In this document: positions 5,220 to 56,404 of the stretch, in pieces
How the letters are laid out: every line of letters starts with the position of its first letter
How positions within the stretch are numbered: position 1 is the first letter of the stretch
Sequence record: NC_016163.1
Length of the DNA stretch: 64,000 nucleotides
Strand: one strand, 5' to 3'
The notes under the pieces: model-generated
Databases searched by the model: none
Told to the model about the DNA's origin: nothing
The model's input: the letters and a program-made list of their open reading frames with translations, nothing else
Made by a program: the position numbers and the translations under genes

Positions 5220-5480
5220 ATGCTTACTTTAAGAATTCTCAAGGATGAGAAACGCCCTTTTCATTTTAATGGTACTTCATTTAAACATACTGTAGAAGTT
5301 TGGTTCAGTGAAAGTGTTAAATATATAGCTAATCCTTTAAACGGTATGATGAATTTTTCAGTCAAGTACAAATTTGTATTGGATTCTGAAAAATTTTATT
5401 CAAAGGTAAATTATTTTGCCATTCGTACTGGTTATCGTAATAAAGTATATGTATTAACTATTAGATCTACAGGCTTCTAA
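5220..5480 (+). CDS. Hypothetical protein, 86 aa
   Basis: Operon packing. Confidence 0.65.
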   Translation: MLTLRILKDEKRPFHFNGTSFKHTVEVWFSESVKYIANPLNGMMNFSVKYKFVLDSEKFYSKVNYFAIRTGYRNKVYVLTIRSTGF

Positions 5481-6042: not shown

Positions 6043-6120
6043 GGGCCATTAGCATAGTGCTCTAATGCAGCCAGCTCATAACTGGAAGATCACCGGTTGG
6101 AATCGCGGTATGGCCCACCA
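6043..6120 (+). tRNA. tRNA with CAU anticodon, probably Ile2 (lysidine type) rather than Met
   Basis: GGGCCAT/ATGGCCC acceptor with C4-G69 and C5-G68 (TilS determinants), CTCATAA loop, encoded CCA; atypical D and T loops. Confidence 0.8.
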
Positions 6121-8873: not shown

Positions 8874-9133
8874 CTTTATTACGTATTAATAAATCTAGAG
8901 AGCATCGCTTAGAAATATTAGTAGAGTCTAAACGATTTTCTGCTTTAGCTGAAGCTGAGGTTCTATTATTACCTTTTTCTCGTAGATTTGAAACAGAATA
9001 TTTGTATTTCCATACTAGCTTTAAAAAATCTGAGAAACCTATAAGTCTTCGTTGCTCGCCAGAATTTGTAAATTTTTGTAACAAAAATACAGGATTCTAT
9101 GATTCTTCTTTAGAAGAACAAATTGTTTTCTAG
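8867..9133 (+). CDS. Hypothetical protein, 88 aa
   Basis: Overlap packing. Confidence 0.6.
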   Translation: MLTLLRINKSREHRLEILVESKRFSALAEAEVLLLPFSRRFETEYLYFHTSFKKSEKPISLRCSPEFVNFCNKNTGFYDSSLEEQIVF

Positions 9134-9137
9134 AGCT

Positions 9138-9150
9138 AACAAAAAAGTAG
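9138..9150 (+). promoter_or_regulatory. Putative late promoter for the ncRNA/tRNA island
   Basis: AACA-AAAAAG-TAG followed by AAATG. Confidence 0.75.
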
Positions 9151-9270
9151 AAATGAAACCTCCGGCTGTGAGCGCATCCCGATTCGGTTACTTTCTAGCT
9201 TCTTTCATATCCTTCTTATTGTTATGGTCTCTAGGAAGTGGGATAAATGGATTTTATCCCACTCCTATTT

Positions 9271-9390
9271 AGTATTTTTATTGTAGGGCAGGTACTTACT
9301 TTTAATCTACAGGAAAATCCTGGGGTTATCCACAGAGAGTATGCAACGTATTGGGCTATACATTGAAACTTGCCCTACAATAAAAATATT
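9271..9390 (+). ncRNA. Unassigned structured RNA B with 21-bp closing stem
   Basis: 9273-9293 pairs with 9368-9388 (one G-U); internal hairpin CAGGA-AAA-TCCTG. Confidence 0.65.
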
Positions 9391-9413
9391 TTATAACAAA
9401 AGAATTAGAAGAG

Positions 9414-9516
9414 TATTTAATGATACTGTATTAGGTTTTCCCTCTTCCTTTAAACCTAATTAAGCCTGGGTTGGTTAGCCGAAAGCAATAGTAACTAATA
9501 CAGTATCGATTAAGTA
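9414..9516 (+). ncRNA. Unassigned structured RNA C with pyrimidine-rich loop
   Basis: GATACTGTATTAG 9422-9434 pairs with 9495-9507; hairpin TTAGGTTT/AAACCTAA closes loop TCCCTCTTCCTTT. Confidence 0.65.
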
Positions 9517-9535
9517 TTTTTTTTTTAAGAATTTA

Positions 9536-9613
9536 GACTCGCTAGCTCAGTTGGTTAGTAGCGGATGACTGTTAATCATCAGGTCGCAGGTTCAAGCCCT
9601 GCGCGAGTCGCCA
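9536..9613 (+). tRNA. trnN: tRNA-Asn(GUU)
   Basis: GATGA-CTGTTAA-TCATC, acceptor GACTCGC/GCGAGTC, CCA. Confidence 0.95.
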
Positions 9614-9623
9614 TATTTATTAT

Positions 9624-9698
9624 TGTCCCTTAAATTAGTGGCTAGACAAATCCATTGTAAAATGGGCGGCACCAGTTCGATCCTGGTAGGGACAACCA
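9624..9698 (+). tRNA. Degenerate tRNA-like gene, anticodon ambiguous (GUA or UGU)
   Basis: Perfect acceptor TGTCCCT/AGGGACA plus ACCA and T arm ACCAG-TTCGATC-CTGGT, but unpaired D arm and 6- or 8-nt anticodon loop. Confidence 0.7.
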
Positions 9699-9699
9699 A

Positions 9700-10046
9700 A
9701 TTAGTCTTATTCCATTAAGACTTACAGACTTAGCTACCAGCTTGGTATCTGAGAGCCTTCTCCCAAGGTTTACCCATAGTTCTATTCGAATAAGGTGAAG
9801 AATAGTTCCGATATAATCACTTCTTAGGAAATGATTAGTGTCTCAGCAAACCGTATGAGACTGAAAGGGTTGAAATAAACGGTTCCTCTAAATTAATAAG
9901 ATTGAATATATCGATCTTAGTGCCAAAGTCGCCAGATACATACGGCATAAATAAAGAGGAGTAGACTAATCAACTACCCTTCTTTATATAAAAATTTCCT
10001 TGTTGAAATGGTAAGGAAGGTAGTTATGCCTGATTCGAAAGAATCT
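9700..10046 (+). ncRNA. Unassigned pseudoknotted RNA D
   Basis: Many short helices; H-type pseudoknot GTCTCA/TGAGAC with loop AACCGT pairing ACGGTT 9879-9884; long-range pairs TATCTG/CAGATA and GGCATAA/TTATGCC. Confidence 0.55.
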
Positions 10047-10060
10047 AAATAACAAAAAAA

Positions 10061-10305
10061 TAGAAGTCCTCGCTTCTAGATGACGGATCAATTTTTTGTT
10101 GTATAAGTCATTAAATTTGAGGTTTTGAGAAAAACTGAGGTTTTTGTCATTAGGCTCTTTACATTTTTGCCCTCACAATTTGTAATTACTTTGCCACTGC
10201 ATATCTTCTTTATGAAGAAAAAATCTACTGTCAGAAGTAGAAACATGAATTCCTTTCAGGCTGAAAGGTGGATGCCCTTATTTAGATAACTCTAGATAAG
10301 GGCAT
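10061..10305 (+). ncRNA. Unassigned hairpin-rich RNA E (own late promoter at 10051)
   Basis: Hairpins at 10061-78, 10080-111, 10113-181, 10252-68, 10272-305; no ORF. Confidence 0.45.
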
Positions 10306-10321
10306 TAACAACCCACGATTA

Positions 10322-10560
10322 CGGGGATGTAGTGTTTATTTTTCTAGGTAGTGAAAGCGTGCACCAGTAACTACCATGTTTACCTCCCACTAAAATGGTG
10401 AAGAGTTAGATCAACTCTTTACTAGGCTACATAGGTATGTAGGGTATTGGAGGTTAAACATTCTATAAATACCAAATGTTAAATTGGTGGAATGCCTATC
10501 CGAGATAACTATCAGATAGAATAGTTAAAAGGGCGTTAGAAAAATTTCACTGCATCCCCG
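10322..10560 (+). ncRNA. Unassigned multibranched RNA F (~240 nt)
   Basis: CGGGGATGTAGTG/CACTGCATCCCCG plus ATTTTTCTA/TAGAAAAAT closing helices; at least five internal helices. Confidence 0.7.
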
Positions 10561-10585
10561 TTCCCTAATTTATTAAGGAACGAAA

Positions 10586-10741
10586 ATGTCTGCTAGTAAA
10601 GAACTTGAAATTGATATCGATAGCGTAGTGTTTAATGAAGATGAGCTTCAAGAGTCCGTTAAACATAACGAAGAGAAAATTGATTCTCAAGAAGTAGTTG
10701 AAGCTTCCGATGAATGTGATGGCGGCGGCTGTAAGATTTAA
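10586..10741 (+). CDS. 51-aa acidic peptide ending DECDGGGCKI, like the ribonucleotide reductase alpha C-terminal redox tail (missed by ORF track)
   Basis: AAGGA RBS, ATG, in-frame TAA, family terminator at 10748; CxxxxCKI as in E. coli NrdA CESGACKI. Confidence 0.75.
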   Translation: MSASKELEIDIDSVVFNEDELQESVKHNEEKIDSQEVVEASDECDGGGCKI

Positions 10742-10909
10742 AAACTTCCCATATCCTCTATTAAGGGGATATGGGGTTTTCTTTCCTTCTTAAAAACGTA
10801 TTTGGTAAACCTTTAAGAATATATTATTTTAGTGATATTGGGTGTTAAAACTCAATGTTAAACAAAAACAAACACTAATTCTAATAAGCAATAAAAGGAA
10901 TACCACAAG

Positions 10910-11338
10910 ATGTCCGACAAACATGTAGTTTATTCTAAAATTGAAAACTTTTTCTCTAAAGTGGCTAACCGTGACTTTGAACCAGTGCTCAGTTCATTGT
11001 TCGGCGGTTTACGTAAACAAGTTCGGTGGGATGTAGTATTTGAAGAAATTCGTTCAATGGATGTGAACGCAATTCCACTTGACAAGTTTAAAGTGATGAG
11101 CAAGGGCGATGTCATTTCTATCTCTGATAATGGAGACACAATCTTTGTTGAAGATATGTTTAATGGTAAGTATACTCTTAAACGTAAACAAGGTATCATT
11201 GAAATGACTGTTGACGGCGAACATTTCACTTTTAAAGATAATAACGATGAAGCTGAATCTGCCAGCTTTGTTGCACCCGTTGATTTCCCTCCGGTGCCAA
11301 ACGGATTTATCGCTAATATCCGTAACCTATTAGCGTAA
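10910..11338 (+). CDS. Hypothetical early protein, 142 aa
   Basis: Early motif at 10819, AAGGA RBS. Confidence 0.85.
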   Translation: MSDKHVVYSKIENFFSKVANRDFEPVLSSLFGGLRKQVRWDVVFEEIRSMDVNAIPLDKFKVMSKGDVISISDNGDTIFVEDMFNGKYTLKRKQGIIEMTVDGEHFTFKDNNDEAESASFVAPVDFPPVPNGFIANIRNLLA

Positions 11339-11392
11339 CGTCATCCTCTTGTGCCCCCGAAAGGGGGTATAACTTTTATTGGAAAAACAAAA

Positions 11393-11722
11393 ATGAATCA
11401 ATACAGCGAATCTTACAAAAGTTCCATTATGGGTTACTTTAAAGATCGTTATTTAGTGCTAATTACTGAGCGCTTTAAAGATCTACCGCAGCTTACTTTT
11501 ATGAAGTTAAAAGTTAAATCTGTAGCAGTAATTAATAACTCTGAATGGGATGATGATTTACTTAAAGCTAATATCCGTTGCTTCTTCTCTCAAGAAATCA
11601 AAGATCATTCAAAATATGAAGATTGGATGACAAGACTTGATGAAGTATTTGAAGAATCCTGCCAGTATGCTAAAGATCAAACATTCATTAAAGCTATGGG
11701 TTCTTTGAGTTTGATTAACTAA
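11393..11722 (+). CDS. Hypothetical protein (probable start 11393; track start 11351 lies in a GAAA-loop hairpin)
   Basis: GGAAAA upstream of in-frame ATG 11393. Confidence 0.75.
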   Translation: MNQYSESYKSSIMGYFKDRYLVLITERFKDLPQLTFMKLKVKSVAVINNSEWDDDLLKANIRCFFSQEIKDHSKYEDWMTRLDEVFEESCQYAKDQTFIKAMGSLSLIN

Positions 11723-11736
11723 AAAAGGATTGTATA

Positions 11737-12111
11737 ATGACTACTATGTACAGAGCAGCCAATAATTTTAGAAGAAAAGTTACACGTTTCTATTCTAGAA
11801 TTGTTAGAAAAGAATTTGAAAAAGAAGTATCAATGCTAATAACTGATAAAGAATCAATAAATACTTTCTTTACCAGTTTAGAAAAATATGATTTTAATCC
11901 TAGACATCTAATTATGACTTGTTTCCCTGTTGGTAAATTAGAAGAAGGAAAAAAATTATTAAATAGTATTCAGAATAGAGGTATTGAGTTTGCTTTAAAT
12001 GAAATATCTTTAGAAGAAAAAAGACTTATTTTAACTGCTATGAATACACCTGATTTTTCTGAAATAATGAATAACCTTTCTGACTCTCTCCTACCAGAAA
12101 AAGTTATTTAA
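11737..12111 (+). CDS. Hypothetical protein, 124 aa
   Basis: AAGGA RBS; terminator follows. Confidence 0.8.
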   Translation: MTTMYRAANNFRRKVTRFYSRIVRKEFEKEVSMLITDKESINTFFTSLEKYDFNPRHLIMTCFPVGKLEEGKKLLNSIQNRGIEFALNEISLEEKRLILTAMNTPDFSEIMNNLSDSLLPEKVI

Positions 12112-12247
12112 TATTTTAATTTTAAAAAAAGACCTTATAAGGTCTTTTTTTTTTTCATGATGTACATTACTATTTAGAATTTATCTATTTTTTAAACAAA
12201 GAATTAGTGTCTTGCATGAAAAATAGATAAATTTTATAGGAGTTTTC

Positions 12248-47848: not shown

Positions 47849-48561
47849 TTAAACTGGAAGAATATTACTTACAGCTTTTCTTTTCTCACCATCAAATTGA
47901 ATTAAACTAAATCCAACAGATTCTAAGATAATATTACCTTTTTTGATAATACCATTGGTAATACTTTCAATATCTGCTAATTTTGCAAATTCGGTAGGAA
48001 ATTCCTCCCTACCAAATGGTATAGCCATAACGTCTACACCAAATCGCTCAATCATTTCAGGATGCTCATCTTTAAGAGCAAGAAGTTTGTCGTAGTACTC
48101 TTCAGGTAAGTAATCCTTAATATTATCAAATCCTACTTTCTTAAACTCAAGAATTTTCATTGATGAGTTTTCAGGAATAGTGTCTTTAGGGAATATAGCG
48201 TTCCAAACAGCCATTGCACGGAATGGCTGCATAGCATATTTATCTTTATATGCGCTAATATTCTTAATTACTCCAGGTTTAAGATATTCAGTGTTACCAC
48301 TTCGAATAGATTCAATAACTGAATATTCGAAGTTTTTAAAGTTTTTAAAGACTGTGAATGGTTTAATTTTCTCAGATAGAAGAATATTATGCTCAAGCTC
48401 ATGAGAATAGAATTCACGGGCTTTCTTAGGCGTACTTGTTTTACGAATTTGAAGACCTTTCATATCAAAGTCAGGATTATCGTAAACGTTACCTTCTTTC
48501 GCAAGTACAATACCTGTATAAGTCTTCTTGTTAGGCGTTAACATGATTCGTTTATAGTGAA
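47849..48561 (-). CDS. polB: Family-B DNA polymerase C-terminal subunit, exon 2
   Basis: KKTY and KGLQIRKTST motifs; frame joined by splicing as MKSE-F-HYKRIM. Confidence 0.88.
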
Positions 48562-48911
48562 CATTTACATTCATCATAGTTCGTTAATCTATGACCGCTT
48601 TTTAAGCTGCTATATATTGCTATATAGATTAGACTATATCTTAAGTACATAACCTATTATGTACCTCTCCCCATTTCGCTTTAAAGGATTTTATAATTGA
48701 AGCCATTCCACTTCAATAACCTACCACTTGGCGCTACTCTACTTGCTTATTCACTTAGATTTCGGTCTAAGCTATGCTTTCGATAGTCGTTGAACCTTAT
48801 TCAATAATTTTTATATTATTTTAAATAATATAAAAATTCTTAAATCTTGGATGCTGATTGTCTCAATGAGAGTTCCAGCAGTTAAAGGAGTTTATAGTGA
48901 GCATCAAGTTT
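48562..48911 (-). mobile_element. Group I intron (350 nt, no ORF) in polB
   Basis: P1 AGTGAGT/GCTCACT with U-G; TGCTGG..TCAGCA P4; TTCAACGACTA and AAGATATAGTC P7; terminal G 48562. Confidence 0.92.
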
Positions 48912-50172
48912 ACTCACTTTTCATATTAACTCTAGGGCGATCTTCTGGAAGTACACCAGCCGCCTTAGTTAACTTATAGAAAACATCACCGATGAAATTA
49001 GTAATAAAGTAAGTAATTACAGCACCGATACTTACACGTTTTTCTTTAGTTAATTTATCAGGGTCTTCACCTGTTGAATCACAAATGTACTCAATAAATG
49101 GACGAATGTACAAGAATGTTGAGTCAGTATCTGATAACAGTACTGTTTTTCTCATCATTGCTTTTACTTTAGTAGTTTTATTTGAGAATGGATAAGAATA
49201 GAATACGAATGCTTTCATCAATTCATTCAATTCTTGAAGACTTTCTTTAATATCTTCTGGCGGTTTCTCAAAATTAAAATAGTTTTCTACAATTAGATTA
49301 CTTGTTACAAATTCTTCAATAGAAGGTAATTTTAAAAACTCCATTAAGTTATTCTTATAATAGAGCATTTCTCTAACTGAGGCAGTTTGACTTTTAACCA
49401 CCTTAATTACCATGTTTCTAATTTCGTCTGTAACTAGGAAGGTACATTTACCAAGTAGATGCTCTACAACATCATTAGTTGTTAAATCATCATTTAAAGT
49501 AAATTCTGGATCTTCCTCAAGATTACAGATATTATACATATACTGAGTAAGTTCATGTTCAGTATCAAATGTAAAGTTACCAGACATAAAGGCTTCAAAG
49601 CCTAAAATAGCGGAAATGATAATTTGCTGTCCGGTATAAGTAATTGATGGGCCGAGGTCAGGGTTAAAGAATATGAATGAACTTGCCCCGAATGCACCAT
49701 AATAGCTGTTAGCTAGAATTTTAAAGATGAGCTGCTTGATGTCAAGGAAATTATAAAGAGATTTATCAACATCGTTGATATGTTGAAGCATTTCCTTTTT
49801 AGTTACTTTACGAGCTTTAAGTAGGAACTCAAGGAACATTCCTGGAAGGTTTTCTTTCTTATTACGGTTATAGAAAAGAGTATTAAAGCCAGTAATGATT
49901 AATCGTTTATCTTCTGGAAGAACTTTATTGTAGACGACAATATCGGCTACTGTTGCGTCCGAATAAGTTTCCTGAACGTTATTATAGACTACTCCGTTAC
50001 GATTCTTCCAATCCTGCAGATAATCGCTTTTTAGTCTATTCCAATCAACTTTTTTAGCTTTTTTTCTTCCTAATGATGTAAGTTTTTCCTTTAGATCATT
50101 AAAAAAGAAGTCAAACGCTTTCTTTTCATTTTTAGTTAAACTTTCATAAGTAATCAATGTTATACACCTCAT
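48912..50172 (-). CDS. polB: Family-B DNA polymerase C-terminal subunit, exon 1 (probable TTG start at 50157)
   Basis: Motif B KILANSYYG and motif C SDTDS. Confidence 0.92.
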
Positions 50173-53623: not shown

Positions 53624-55309
53624 ATGGAACAAGATAAAGTGTATAAACTCTTTATCGGGAGAACGGAAGAAAAAGTAAAACGATTTAATTTTACTTTATT
53701 AAAGGTGGAAGAAATTCCACCTACTCCTGGAAAGAAAGACTTAGCGTCAAAGCATCTTTTAACTGTTAAATGTGATAAAGATCATATTACACAAGTTAAA
53801 GCCTGTAATTTTAAAGGTAAATGCCTAATCTGTTCTGGTAAGAACCAGAAAACTACGGAGCAATTTGCTAAAGAAGTTGATGATATAACTAATGGAGAAT
53901 ATAAATTAGTCAGTGATTATATTAATAAATCTACTAAAGTTGATATAAGCCATTTAGAATGTAATAGGGCTTTTAAAGTAACCCCTAATGATTTTTTGAA
54001 TAAAAGTAATAGATGTCCTTTCTGCAATACTAATAGAACTAAACAGTATTCTAAAGATGATATGGTTCTAGCTACAATAGACACTGTATCTGAGTATTTC
54101 AATTTAAATGTCATAGATGAGACTGATGATTATTGGATTGGAAGAGATTTATTAAATGATATCCAATTAATCTTTAAGAAGAAATATATCTCTCAATTAG
54201 CTATCCGTTCTAAAAATCAGCGACCTGTAACCAAATATGAGTTTGCAGATATATTAGAGAAAGATGGGTATGAATTTGTAGATATTAATAGCATTCCTAC
54301 ACTAATAGGTGACAAAGAGAAATATTTAATTAGACATAAAGATTGTGACCATGAATACTCTGTAAGATATAATCACTTCTATATCAATGAAAGGCGTTGC
54401 CCTAAATGCTCTAAAGGTAGAAAATTCTCTAATGGTGAAAAAGAAATATTATCATTTATTGAATCATTAGGTATAGAGTGTATTCCAAATTACAGACCTA
54501 AAGGTAAGGGTAAAGAATTAGATATTTTTATACCTAGTATTTCTTTAGGTATTGAGTATAATGGTCAGTATTGGCATTCTGAAAGAATGTCTAGTGATAA
54601 ATTAAATTTATTTAAGAAGACTGAATATTTTGCAGAGAATGGAATACGTACAATTCATATTCTTTCTAGCGAATGGGCTTCTAAATCTGAGATAGTAAAA
54701 AGTCGTATTAGATATTTGGTTGGAAAAATAGATATAAGAATTCCTGCTAGGAAAACTATCTTTAAAGAAATACCATCTAAAACGGCCAACAACTTCCTAG
54801 AAGCTAACCATATTCAAGGTAAAGATAGAAATATTTTTAAATCTTATGGGTTATTCTATAATAATGGCCTTGTATCAGTTATAACATATAATAAGCCTAG
54901 GATTATAACTAATAATAAAAATGATGGTAAAAGCTTAGAGATTGGTAGATTTGCTAGCATTTTAAATACTAATGTGATTTCAGGGTTTTCCAAATTACTT
55001 AAAAACTCATTAGAACGGTTAATGGATGAATATACATTTATTTATACATACGCTGATATGCGTTGGTCTACTGGAGGGGTATATGATGCCAGTGGATTTG
55101 ATTTTGATTCTGTAACTAAACCGTCATATTACTATTTTAGAAATGATAGTGAATTATTCCATCGCTCTAACTTTATGAAGCATAAGTTGGTAGGTAAGCT
55201 AGAGAAATTTGATGAAAATTTATCTGAATACCAGAATATGCTTAATAACGGCTATGATAGAATTTGGGATTGTGGTAATTTAAAATACATTCTAAATTTA
55301 GATGATTAG
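53624..55309 (+). CDS. Second Hef-like endonuclease (Zn ribbons, PD-(D/E)xK, Mom/GNAT-like C-terminus)
   Basis: ELDIFIPSISLGIEYNGQYWH; EIGRFAS..GFSKLL..YADMRWSTGGVYDASGF. Confidence 0.8.
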   Translation: MEQDKVYKLFIGRTEEKVKRFNFTLLKVEEIPPTPGKKDLASKHLLTVKCDKDHITQVKACNFKGKCLICSGKNQKTTEQFAKEVDDITNGEYKLVSDYINKSTKVDISHLECNRAFKVTPNDFLNKSNRCPFCNTNRTKQYSKDDMVLATIDTVSEYFNLNVIDETDDYWIGRDLLNDIQLIFKKKYISQLAIRSKNQRPVTKYEFADILEKDGYEFVDINSIPTLIGDKEKYLIRHKDCDHEYSVRYNHFYINERRCPKCSKGRKFSNGEKEILSFIESLGIECIPNYRPKGKGKELDIFIPSISLGIEYNGQYWHSERMSSDKLNLFKKTEYFAENGIRTIHILSSEWASKSEIVKSRIRYLVGKIDIRIPARKTIFKEIPSKTANNFLEANHIQGKDRNIFKSYGLFYNNGLVSVITYNKPRIITNNKNDGKSLEIGRFASILNTNVISGFSKLLKNSLERLMDEYTFIYTYADMRWSTGGVYDASGFDFDSVTKPSYYYFRNDSELFHRSNFMKHKLVGKLEKFDENLSEYQNMLNNGYDRIWDCGNLKYILNLDD

Positions 55310-55505
55310 GAGATTGAAAATGACTTATTTTGACATTACTGATGATATGATCTATGCGGCTGAACAGGAATTACTTAATACTCCTGGAGAAGGAATCATT
55401 GATGAATCACTTGCTCAGTCAAATGTATTTCGATTCATTAAAGCTGCATTGGAAGCAGCTAATGTTCAAGTAGTTGATTGCCGTATATCAACTTCTGACA
55501 ATTAA
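55302..55505 (+). CDS. Hypothetical protein, ~67 aa
   Basis: GGAG RBS favours the internal ATG at 55320. Confidence 0.65.
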   Translation: MIRRLKMTYFDITDDMIYAAEQELLNTPGEGIIDESLAQSNVFRFIKAALEAANVQVVDCRISTSDN

Positions 55506-55570
55506 TGTGTTTAGTTATGATTCATTGATATATAATTTTATTGTATCTTCTATATAAGGTTAATTAATAA

Positions 55571-56404
55571 ATGAAAGAAGATCTAGAGGATTATATAAAT
55601 AGAATAATAAATAAATCCGAAATTCCTATATATGGAATAACTATATGTGAAAGAGGTAAAGAAGTAGATACATTTTCTATTTCTAATGGTAAAGAAAAAA
55701 TCATCCGTAACTTTAAAATATACGATACTGATTATGGTACCGTTATGGAAAAAGTGGTTGACGGTAAATTAGGTAACGGTTTAGTTCTTCCAACCATGCC
55801 TCATGGCTACGTTATTTATAAACGTGCTAGAAAATCTCATATAGGTGGAGGTAGAGTAATTAGGGTTAATAAAGCATTTATCCGACTGTTTTTTAGTTCA
55901 GATATTTGTTTCCTATCCGGTGGTAGACGTTATCAGATAGAAGAAGCTGATCTTCGATTTAAGGAAAAGGTTAAGATGGCTAAGAAGGTCAAAGATATAA
56001 AGAAGGTAATGAAAGAACATGAAAATGCTACGCTACCTTTAAAAGTAAGAACTCTTTTAGAATTAATTGAAGAGCAGTTTACTGTAGAGCGAGCCGAGGT
56101 TTTCAATAAATTAAATATTAAGATTCAAGACGCAATATTCAATATTAGTAGTATTAAATCTGCAAGAAAACTTCTTGAAGAAGCATATACTATTAAACGT
56201 AGAAATTTATGGTTTGAAACTATAGATTTTGCAATTAAAGCTTTGGAAAAGAAAAGAGATAATATATTTGATAATATTATGAATGGCTTTGATTCTCCAA
56301 AGTATCCAAAGAAACTCACTCAAATTAATGAACGTTTATCATTAGTTAAAGAGTTGATGGAAAAAGTTAAAGAAGACAACCAAAATAATCTTAATTCATA
56401 TTAA
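55571..56404 (+). CDS. Hypothetical protein, 277 aa
   Basis: Early-type variant at ~55529. Confidence 0.8.
   Translation: MKEDLEDYINRIINKSEIPIYGITICERGKEVDTFSISNGKEKIIRNFKIYDTDYGTVMEKVVDGKLGNGLVLPTMPHGYVIYKRARKSHIGGGRVIRVNKAFIRLFFSSDICFLSGGRRYQIEEADLRFKEKVKMAKKVKDIKKVMKEHENATLPLKVRTLLELIEEQFTVERAEVFNKLNIKIQDAIFNISSIKSARKLLEEAYTIKRRNLWFETIDFAIKALEKKRDNIFDNIMNGFDSPKYPKKLTQINERLSLVKELMEKVKEDNQNNLNSY

Follow-up and report, generated by a model that had tools for sequence, protein, structure and literature searches.

Introduction

Large, well-folded RNAs without an assigned function are rare in bacteria and phages. The phage RNAs GOLLD and ROOL form RNA-only cages that have no precedent, and the abundance reported for ROOL equals that of 16S rRNA. 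The stable RNAs of phage T4 (species 1 and 2, rnaC/rnaD) are structured molecules that are encoded in a tRNA cluster and released from a common precursor, and in Escherichia coli the genes thrU-tyrU-glyT-thrT-tufB exemplify the cotranscription of tRNA genes with a downstream protein gene. Bacteriophage phiR1-37, a 262-kb phiKZ-like jumbo phage of Yersinia, has uracil-containing DNA and its own RNA polymerases. Both GOLLD and ROOL are phage RNAs that are frequently encoded close to tRNA islands, and conserved kissing loops hold them together (10.1101/2024.12.08.627333; PMC5737381). Here we describe RNA F, a 239-nucleotide (nt) RNA structure that forms the tail of the second tRNA island in a 64,000-nt stretch of the phiR1-37 genome (the window; record NC_016163.1, in which window coordinates plus 62000 give record positions). 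By blastn, window positions 9000-12200 are 100% identical to this record. RNA F is previously undescribed, unannotated and outside the named families, and it resembles GOLLD and ROOL in context and style only.

RNA F folds into a stable multibranched domain

RNA F is a genuine, selectively maintained RNA structure of the plus strand. Its elements are given below, with the helices P1 to P9 as they occur in the predicted minimum free energy (MFE) fold.

10322-10560, plus strand: RNA F, a 239-nt multibranched domain in which the P1+P2 closing stack surrounds a five-way junction (P3, the P4-P5-P6 arm, P7 and the P8-P9 arm)
10322-10334 / 10548-10560, plus strand: P1, 13 bp
10338-10346 / 10537-10545, plus strand: P2, 9 bp
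10347-10352 / 10370-10375, plus strand: P3, stem of the hairpin 10347-10375 with a 17-nt loop
10376-10387 / 10449-10461, plus strand: P4, 12 bp with a bulge; the P4-P5-P6 arm spans 10376-10461
10396-10407 / 10413-10424, plus strand: P5, a 12-bp hairpin
10427-10432 / 10437-10442, plus strand: P6, a 6-bp hairpin with a variable loop
10470-10475 / 10484-10489, plus strand: P7, stem of the hairpin 10470-10489
10492-10497 / 10531-10536, plus strand: P8; the P8-P9 arm spans 10492-10536
10506-10512 / 10521-10527, plus strand: P9

The MFE of this fold was -82.5 kcal/mol, compared with -52.1 ± 4.6 kcal/mol in 200 dinucleotide shuffles, none of which was as good (z = -6.6). RNA F was also the most stable among 531 plus-strand scanning windows of 239 nt across the 64 kb and lay -28 kcal/mol (-3.9 standard deviations) off a GC-corrected fit to the same windows, in a scan whose registration on position 10322 slightly biased it in favor of RNA F. 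The fold was unchanged when RNA F was folded inside a 1.47-kb context. All helices that a first-pass annotation, made from the sequence alone, had listed here (closing helices of 13 and 9 bp and four internal helices) recurred in the MFE fold of 10322-10560; P7, P8 and P9 had been missed. The reverse complement folded with -73.1 kcal/mol (z = -7.0), leaving the plus strand 9.4 kcal/mol more stable. Because seven of the plus-strand pairs are G-U, the minus-strand fold lacked P8, part of P5 and one P1 pair.

Compensatory changes support the fold in related phages

Relatives of the locus were found by searching a large protein collection with g118, the gene that follows g117, which yielded three clusters at 75 to 78% identity on syntenic contigs, and by a search with g117, the open reading frame (ORF) downstream of RNA F, together with a listing of its protein cluster, which yielded many further relative contigs. 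A covariance model built from the first five sequences identified 28 full-length plus-strand copies of RNA F (222 to 285 bits), all in metagenomic contigs of phiR1-37-like phages, as well as three more copies interrupted by contig ends; scores on the minus strand were 25 to 31 bits. RNA F and g117 were linked in 28/28 contigs, every full-length copy stopping 25 to 26 nt ahead of the g117 homologue.

Pair counts were made on the 15 distinct RNA F sequences, in which standard pairs made up 97.0% of the pair cells. Both sides had changed in 12 pairs, versus 4.3 ± 1.4 in column shuffles (0/500 reached 12), and a slid control, in which partners were moved by 1 to 3 columns, produced only 0 to 2 double-changed pairs. 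At least one double-changed pair was held by seven of the eight helices, with P6 being invariant: P5 had four, P4 had two, and P7, P8 and P9 had one each. The stem pair 10348/10374 of P3 covaried among GC, AU and GU, and single-side substitutions within RNA F proceeded from GC through GU to AU on the plus strand. RNAalifold predicted 73 pairs for the alignment, and in the most divergent homologue, L013, P7 and P9 were shortened. Since the homologues are close (about 89% column identity) and the flanking coding DNA is conserved to a similar degree, the evidence for the structure lies in the pattern of substitutions and not in conservation itself. RNA F was intact in 28/28 contigs, while the adjacent tRNA genes and a gene for a homing endonuclease are present in some contigs and absent from others.

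RNA F ends a longer structured region of the tRNA island

A structured noncoding region of about 860 nt (9697-10560) closes the tRNA island, and RNA F is both its terminal domain and its best-defined one, a position which the first-pass annotation had overlooked. The features that precede RNA F are as follows.

9536-9613, plus strand (9536-9610 in the record): tRNA-Asn (GUU), first gene of the second tRNA island (record annotation, ARAGORN and Rfam)
9624-9695, plus strand: degenerate tRNA-like sequence, sub-threshold in Rfam (tRNA model, 27.1 bits; gathering score, 29)
9697-10050, plus strand: conserved structured noncoding sequence 3' of the tRNA genes
10062-10321, plus strand: conserved structured segment from a putative transcription start to RNA F, with hairpins at 10252-10268 and 10271-10306

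The approximately 620 nt from 9697 to 10321 folded with -170.3 kcal/mol (z = -7.0; 20 shuffles), and RNAalifold on five sequences gave 164 pairs, 17 of them with both sides changed, in a stretch that is 75 to 100% identical to its relatives. Within it, the segment 10062-10321 was mostly invariant among relatives but had six double-changed pairs, and the hairpin 10271-10306 consists of 16 perfect bp (-24.3 kcal/mol). An invariant block at 9994-10090 was also observed, and the stretch may contain further RNA domains.

Between tRNA-Asn and g117 the record annotates only a short antisense coding sequence, g116 (10088-10246, minus strand), and nothing at 10322-10560. Indels of 2, 3 and 5 nt in close relatives cross both g116 and a 54-codon plus-strand ORF at 10125-10289, and the region is therefore noncoding. 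The 54-codon ORF was rejected as a gene, and g116, for which the RNA sequencing (RNA-seq) signal is about 0, is probably not a gene either.

The tRNA complement of the island varies among relatives. All carry tRNA-Asn and tRNA-Tyr, to which L011 adds tRNA-Phe and tRNA-Ser; the L010 island has an odd tRNA-like gene (a four-base-anticodon tRNA), and an HNH endonuclease gene is inserted in the islands of L009 and others. The degenerate sequence of phiR1-37 at 9624-9695 was not called by ARAGORN, and only its 3' part aligns to the tRNA-Tyr of the relatives. Thus, phiR1-37 keeps tRNA-Asn and has a sub-threshold tRNA-like sequence in the Tyr position, and the content of the island turns over while the structured RNA stays.

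Two observations concern tRNA loci elsewhere. At 6043-6117 (plus strand) the record annotates a tRNA-Met (CAU) on which ARAGORN and Rfam at the gathering score are silent in the window; ARAGORN does find tRNA-Met at the matching site in relatives L009 and L011. In KpLz-2_45, a jumbo phage of Klebsiella (L058 4175-5297), 1.1 kb of unannotated sequence directly past a tRNA cluster includes a T-arm-like segment and gave no Rfam match; this stretch may be another unclassified tRNA-island RNA.

RNA F lies outside known families and was found in one phage clade

At gathering thresholds, Rfam returned only tRNAs and a group I intron in the window, and none on 10322-10560. The intron (48610-49009, minus strand; RF00028, 63.4 bits) lies between ORFs 47849-48577 and 48910-50172. 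Even at E ≤ 10, nothing overlapped RNA F, with riboswitches, leaders, ribozymes, GOLLD, ROOL, tmRNA, RNase P, 6S and Y RNA included in the search; no riboswitch family was recovered for it, nor was any other. The RNA F homologue regions of L011 and L013 gave no Rfam family match, and neither ARAGORN nor Rfam detected a tRNA or tmRNA inside 10322-10560. P1 opens with GGGG and closes with CCCC, yet it is a continuous 13-bp helix without a T-arm.

Searches for more distant copies returned phiR1-37 alone in three cases: single-protein pattern searches of IMG/VR with g121 and g118, a P1-based gapped pattern in IMG/VR, and blastn of 10300-10585 against 50,697 phage records (E ≤ 10). Loop-based patterns had no match in metagenome_contigs (two scans) or genome_contigs. 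Thirteen other exact IMG/VR matches to the 17-nt P3 loop were dismissed as chance, as the covariance model aligned the loop only (11.5 bits). When the covariance model was run on the whole window, on the loci of distant g117 homologues and on the misc_4 region, it revealed no paralogue or distant homologue, only short hairpins of at most 13.5 bits; misc_4 is the 297-nt intergenic RNA detected by RNA-seq at record positions 61640-61936, just left of the window (PMC4848604). As far as the searched collections show, RNA F appears to be confined to the phiR1-37 clade.

Like GOLLD and ROOL, which are phage encoded and lie beside tRNA islands, RNA F is phage encoded and adjoins a tRNA island; it is likewise multijunctional, has no assigned function and is possibly cotranscribed with tRNAs. 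It also forms a well-defined 3' domain of an approximately 860-nt structured stretch, as does the conserved 3' region of GOLLD. The Rfam models of GOLLD and ROOL nevertheless had no match in RNA F even at E ≤ 10, and at 239 nt RNA F is smaller than either (roughly 580 to 800 nt). An ornate RNA of the GOLLD/ROOL kind would be expected to exceed 500 nt and to combine many junctions with pseudoknots supported by covariation. RNA F has one five-way and one three-way junction and no supported pseudoknot; the entire stretch 9697-10560 does reach about 860 nt and is structured (z = -7.0 and -6.6 for its two parts) and conserved, its status as a single RNA being putative. Moreover, ROOL is reported to be as abundant as 16S rRNA, whereas the RNA F locus was almost silent in the one RNA-seq study, and RNA F, unlike GOLLD and ROOL, is joined directly to the ribosome-binding hairpin of an ORF. 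The only hint of oligomerization in RNA F is an invariant loop palindrome, which has a chance probability of 0.20. Like the T4 stable RNAs, RNA F is a structured RNA that belongs to a phage tRNA gene cluster or directly follows it, but it is larger, has no sequence similarity to them (blastn, 50,697 phage records, E ≤ 10), and its cotranscription and processing are putative.

The P3 loop is invariant

The most constant loop of RNA F is the one closing P3.

10353-10369, plus strand: P3 loop, 17 nt, GAAAGCGUGCACCAGUA

It was unchanged in 14 of the 15 distinct homologues, the exception being one C-to-U change beyond the hexamer GUGCAC (10359-10364), which is the sole unpaired self-complementary hexamer in RNA F. 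In contrast, the loops of P5, P6 and P9 differed in sequence and length among homologues. A loop-loop duplex of P3 was predicted at -10.1 kcal/mol. No trans target complementary to the P3 loop was found in the window with up to 3 mismatches allowed. Candidate intramolecular partners, namely, UGGUG at P5 or P7 for the P3 loop, and partners for CCCAC, were rejected as unsupported in L013 on inspection by eye.

RNA F and g117 probably share a transcription unit

The candidate transcription signals around RNA F are the following.

9138-9150, plus strand: AACA-N6-TAG motif just past g115, upstream of the second tRNA island
10051-10063, plus strand: AACA-N6-TAG motif, a putative late promoter with a predicted start at about 10062, 260 nt upstream of RNA F
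10747-10776, plus strand: intrinsic terminator of the usual CCCATATCC...GGATATGGG type of this phage (repeat family D4), the first one 3' of RNA F

The late promoters of phage AR9, the nearest relative to have been studied, have the consensus AACA-(6N)-TA/G, and a late consensus of phiR1-37 is, according to the same source, absent from the transcriptome study (PMC5312081). The motif AACA-N6-TAG had 19 sense hits in the window, of which 13 lay no more than 120 nt ahead of a gene start, in territory that makes up 12% (binomial P = 2e-8), and three of the remaining six precede RNA genes, at 5479 (first tRNA cluster), 9138 (second tRNA island) and 10051. Several genes 3' of motif hits have been classed as late (g111, g129 and g131). 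Judged by its sequence, AACA-N6-TAG may thus be the late-promoter consensus of phiR1-37. Motif positions include 5479, 7459, 9138, 10051, 12195, 17836, 19205, 20627, 22066, 22830, 32279, 33142, 33919 and 51852 on the plus strand and 38403, 47777 and 51844 on the minus strand, and the motif is often followed by AAAT.

The 10051 motif was kept in 13/13 relatives, and the start predicted from it runs straight into a hairpin at 10061-10078. No sigma-70-type promoter was found on the plus strand between 9400 and 10900, no early-promoter core TATATTAT between 8079 and 10815, and no terminator-like site between the 10051 motif and 10747. Judging from these motifs, the locus probably forms a unit of about 715 nt that consists of 260 nt of structured RNA, RNA F, a hairpin over the Shine-Dalgarno (SD) sequence, g117 and the terminator. 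In a manner similar to the tufB-type operon, g117 follows an array of tRNA genes that it shares its orientation with, and the terminator comes after the ORF. The phiR1-37 arrangement differs in the approximately 860 nt of structured noncoding RNA between the tRNAs and the 51-codon ORF, and in its internal promoter-like motif, which may uncouple the tRNAs from g117.

The ribosome-binding site of g117 is predicted to be occluded independently of RNA F

RNA F is followed directly by two features.

10560-10581, plus strand: SD-sequestering hairpin, GUUCC.UAA/UUA.GGAAC
10586-10741, plus strand: g117, a 51-codon acidic ORF with a conserved C-x4-C-K-I tail, annotated in the record

The first-pass annotation had placed a structured RNA directly upstream of a sequestered SD, with a TTCC(C)T/AGGAA hairpin able to hide the SD of the ORF at 10586, and both proposals were borne out: RNA F lies on the plus strand, and the hairpin is present at 10560-10581, with the GG of the SD paired. 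The hairpin has a stability of -6.0 kcal/mol (z = -3.9; -6.6 kcal/mol in the L011 variant) and is kept in all relatives. It starts at G10560, the base with which P1 ends and the only one that the two helices share. In partition function calculations the SD GG was paired at 0.94 to 0.99, whether the full leader, RNA F alone or no RNA F was included.

A leader riboswitch had also been proposed. Its premise of a transcript shared with the 10586 ORF is probable, given the 10051 motif, the lack of a terminator before 10747 and the linkage in 28/28 contigs, but control by a riboswitch-like mechanism was not supported, as the SD hairpin is predicted to form equally without RNA F and no conserved alternative to the 13- plus 9-bp stack was found. 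A competing pairing of the 5' strand of P1 with 10194-10201 (CACUGCAU) was considered and rejected because it is not conserved in relatives, and a nonexhaustive search, by eye and partition function, revealed no conserved competitor of the 22-bp P1+P2. RNA F does share with SD-sequestering riboswitches and protein-binding leaders its place directly 5' of an ORF whose SD lies in a conserved hairpin, probably on one transcript. It differs from them in having no aptamer-family match, no mutually exclusive pairing and no effect on SD occlusion in silico, and homologous ORFs in other phages lack RNA F. Distant g117 homologues overlap the preceding genes or lie close behind such genes or a terminator; the regions upstream of them are short and ordinary and contain no long leader. 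A ligand-driven switch is thus unlikely, because SD occlusion is predicted to be independent of RNA F, no conserved alternative to P1 was found and distant g117 genes have no such leader, and on these models RNA F would be poorly described as a metabolite riboswitch. An effect on g117 or on the stability of its mRNA that is mediated by a protein or by stacking is possible.

Homologues of g117 were found in the phiR1-37 clade and in jumbo phages of Klebsiella, Erwinia and Salmonella, with the C-terminal Cys pair being invariant. The protein matched no family or structure in Pfam, PHROGs or PDB, its top PDB profile matches being insignificant and unrelated. The first-pass description of g117 as a peptide with a ribonucleotide reductase tail, a likeness limited to the last eight residues, was not confirmed: no reductase was found in Pfam, PHROGs or PDB by sequence or profile, in searches that included no direct comparison with the large subunit of the class Ia enzyme, NrdA.

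Discussion

Our tentative preference, by analogy, is to regard RNA F as a self-contained, partner-binding module of a long structured tRNA-island transcript, in a niche that would parallel that of GOLLD and ROOL. The analysis establishes its structure, compensatory conservation, strand, context and lack of a known family, whereas the transcription unit, partner binding and any processing are inferred. On this view RNA F would be a folding module at the 3' end of a transcript from the tail of the second tRNA island. The unit would begin at a late-type promoter at about 10051 and end with the terminator at 10747-10776, and between them would lie about 260 nt of structured RNA, followed by RNA F, the SD hairpin and g117. 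The invariant 17-nt P3 loop would be displayed to a macromolecular partner, which might be a protein, a different RNA or another RNA F molecule contacted via GUGCAC, and the role of the module would be that of a scaffold, decoy or assembly module, like GOLLD, ROOL and the T4 stable RNAs, rather than that of a metabolite-sensing switch. The 22-bp P1+P2 stack could act as a rigid stalk or provide a site for double-strand processing that frees the module from its flanks, and g117 translation would be repressed by the small SD hairpin acting independently. A bolder version, which we consider improbable, is that RNA F, alone or with the preceding approximately 620 nt, founds a new class of "ornate" tRNA-island RNAs that would self-associate through the P3 loop into an RNA-only assembly, with g117 on the same transcript.

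Several observations weigh against the partner-binding module. No partner of the P3 loop was found, and a palindrome such as GUGCAC is expected in a random 17-mer with a probability of 0.20, i.e., in one of five. An unfiltered covariance search of three other jumbo-phage tRNA islands gave no RNA F-like match, only hairpins of at most 13.5 bits, and the close kinship of all homologues limits the weight of the loop invariance and of the g117 linkage. The 10051 promoter is placed by its motif and not by mapping. In the phiR1-37 RNA-seq study, for which column-purified, rRNA-depleted RNA was collected at nine time points (PMC4848604; GSE77068), the total gene reads of g117 were 3.9, 1.5 and 1.2, and none of the ten new RNA species listed maps to RNA F, although the 297-nt intergenic RNA elsewhere was detected; total gene reads were about 0 for g116, 36 to 110 for g115 and >22,000 for g118. 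Column purification loses some small RNA, but 239 nt should mostly survive. In that study, therefore, either the locus was nearly silent or its products escaped capture, and this argues as much against an active g117 mRNA as against a stable RNA of high abundance.

A real, albeit doubtful, possibility is that RNA F acts in cis as the sensor in an approximately 520-nt 5' untranslated region (UTR) that sets the translation or stability of the g117 mRNA, either by binding a protein or ligand or through stacking of P1 on the SD hairpin, which would strengthen occlusion of the ribosome site. Such a leader fits the one predicted unit, with its conserved 10051 motif and no terminator before 10747, the spacing of zero nt between P1 and the SD hairpin in 28/28 contigs, and the SD pairing probability of >0.94; yet this hairpin is predicted equally without RNA F, P1+P2 (22 bp with a GC-rich base) is far more stable than the usual switching helices, and their sole candidate competitor (10194-10201) is not conserved. 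The scant g117 signal in RNA-seq is compatible with a repressed or unstable mRNA, but low reads speak to RNA abundance and not to translation. Furthermore, while a 520-nt structured UTR before a 51-codon ORF is hard to account for without regulation, RNA F matches no riboswitch or leader family, and distant g117 homologues have short, ordinary upstream regions.

The remaining alternatives appear to us less credible. Many reverse transcriptases of the UG/DRT defense type use a structured noncoding RNA (ncRNA) closed by terminal inverted repeats, and phiR1-37 encodes a 690-residue, reverse-transcriptase-like protein, g096, the only one found and annotated as hypothetical (record 54169-56241; L059 2670-4742), which matches RVT_1 with 43.8 bits (cutoff, 29.6) and, weakly, UG21, AbiP2 and Drt3b-like models. 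We think it very unlikely that RNA F is the template or cofactor RNA of this enzyme. In favor of this role, a 13-bp terminal helix closes RNA F, to which no other role has been assigned, but g096 lies about 16 kb away, whereas known ncRNAs of this kind adjoin their reverse transcriptase, and misc_4 (record 61640-61936) is nearer and was detected. In addition, no cDNA-like repeat or template feature was seen in RNA F, and its locus is almost unexpressed, while the published RNA-seq data show late, strong expression of g096. That the inverted repeats act in single-stranded or extruded DNA, for example at a replication or recombination site, without functional RNA, seems unlikely as well. Both strands beat their shuffles (z = -6.6 and -7.0), and the near-zero g117 signal suits a silent locus, yet the seven G-U pairs, several of them invariant, exist on the plus strand only, single-side substitutions pass through plus-strand G-U and not through the A-C expected of selection on the minus strand or the duplex, the plus strand is 9.4 kcal/mol more stable, and RNA F is oriented with, and lies between, the promoter-like motif, tRNA genes and terminator. 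A chance structure in an AT-rich spacer, or a functionless decaying remnant, was disfavored already and is scarcely believable: its narrow distribution in one phage clade, the lack of expression evidence for RNA F and the lost or degraded tRNA genes of phiR1-37 in the same island would agree with decay, whereas the z of -6.6 and the rank of top outlier among 531 windows, the compensatory changes far above shuffled and slid controls, and the presence of whole RNA F in 28/28 contigs despite turnover of tRNA and homing-endonuclease genes all contradict it.

The alignment and covariance model of RNA F are at hand, as are public, strand-specific RNA-seq reads, and AACA-N6-TAG gives phiR1-37 a candidate late-promoter consensus. 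RNA F is a new unclassified structured RNA that shares the genomic niche of GOLLD and ROOL but comes from a phiKZ-like jumbo phage that infects Enterobacteria. As a leader, it would represent a structured 5' UTR of exceptional size that controls a 51-residue peptide conserved across jumbo phages; if it is a stand-alone RNA, it would widen the set of RNAs known from phage tRNA islands.

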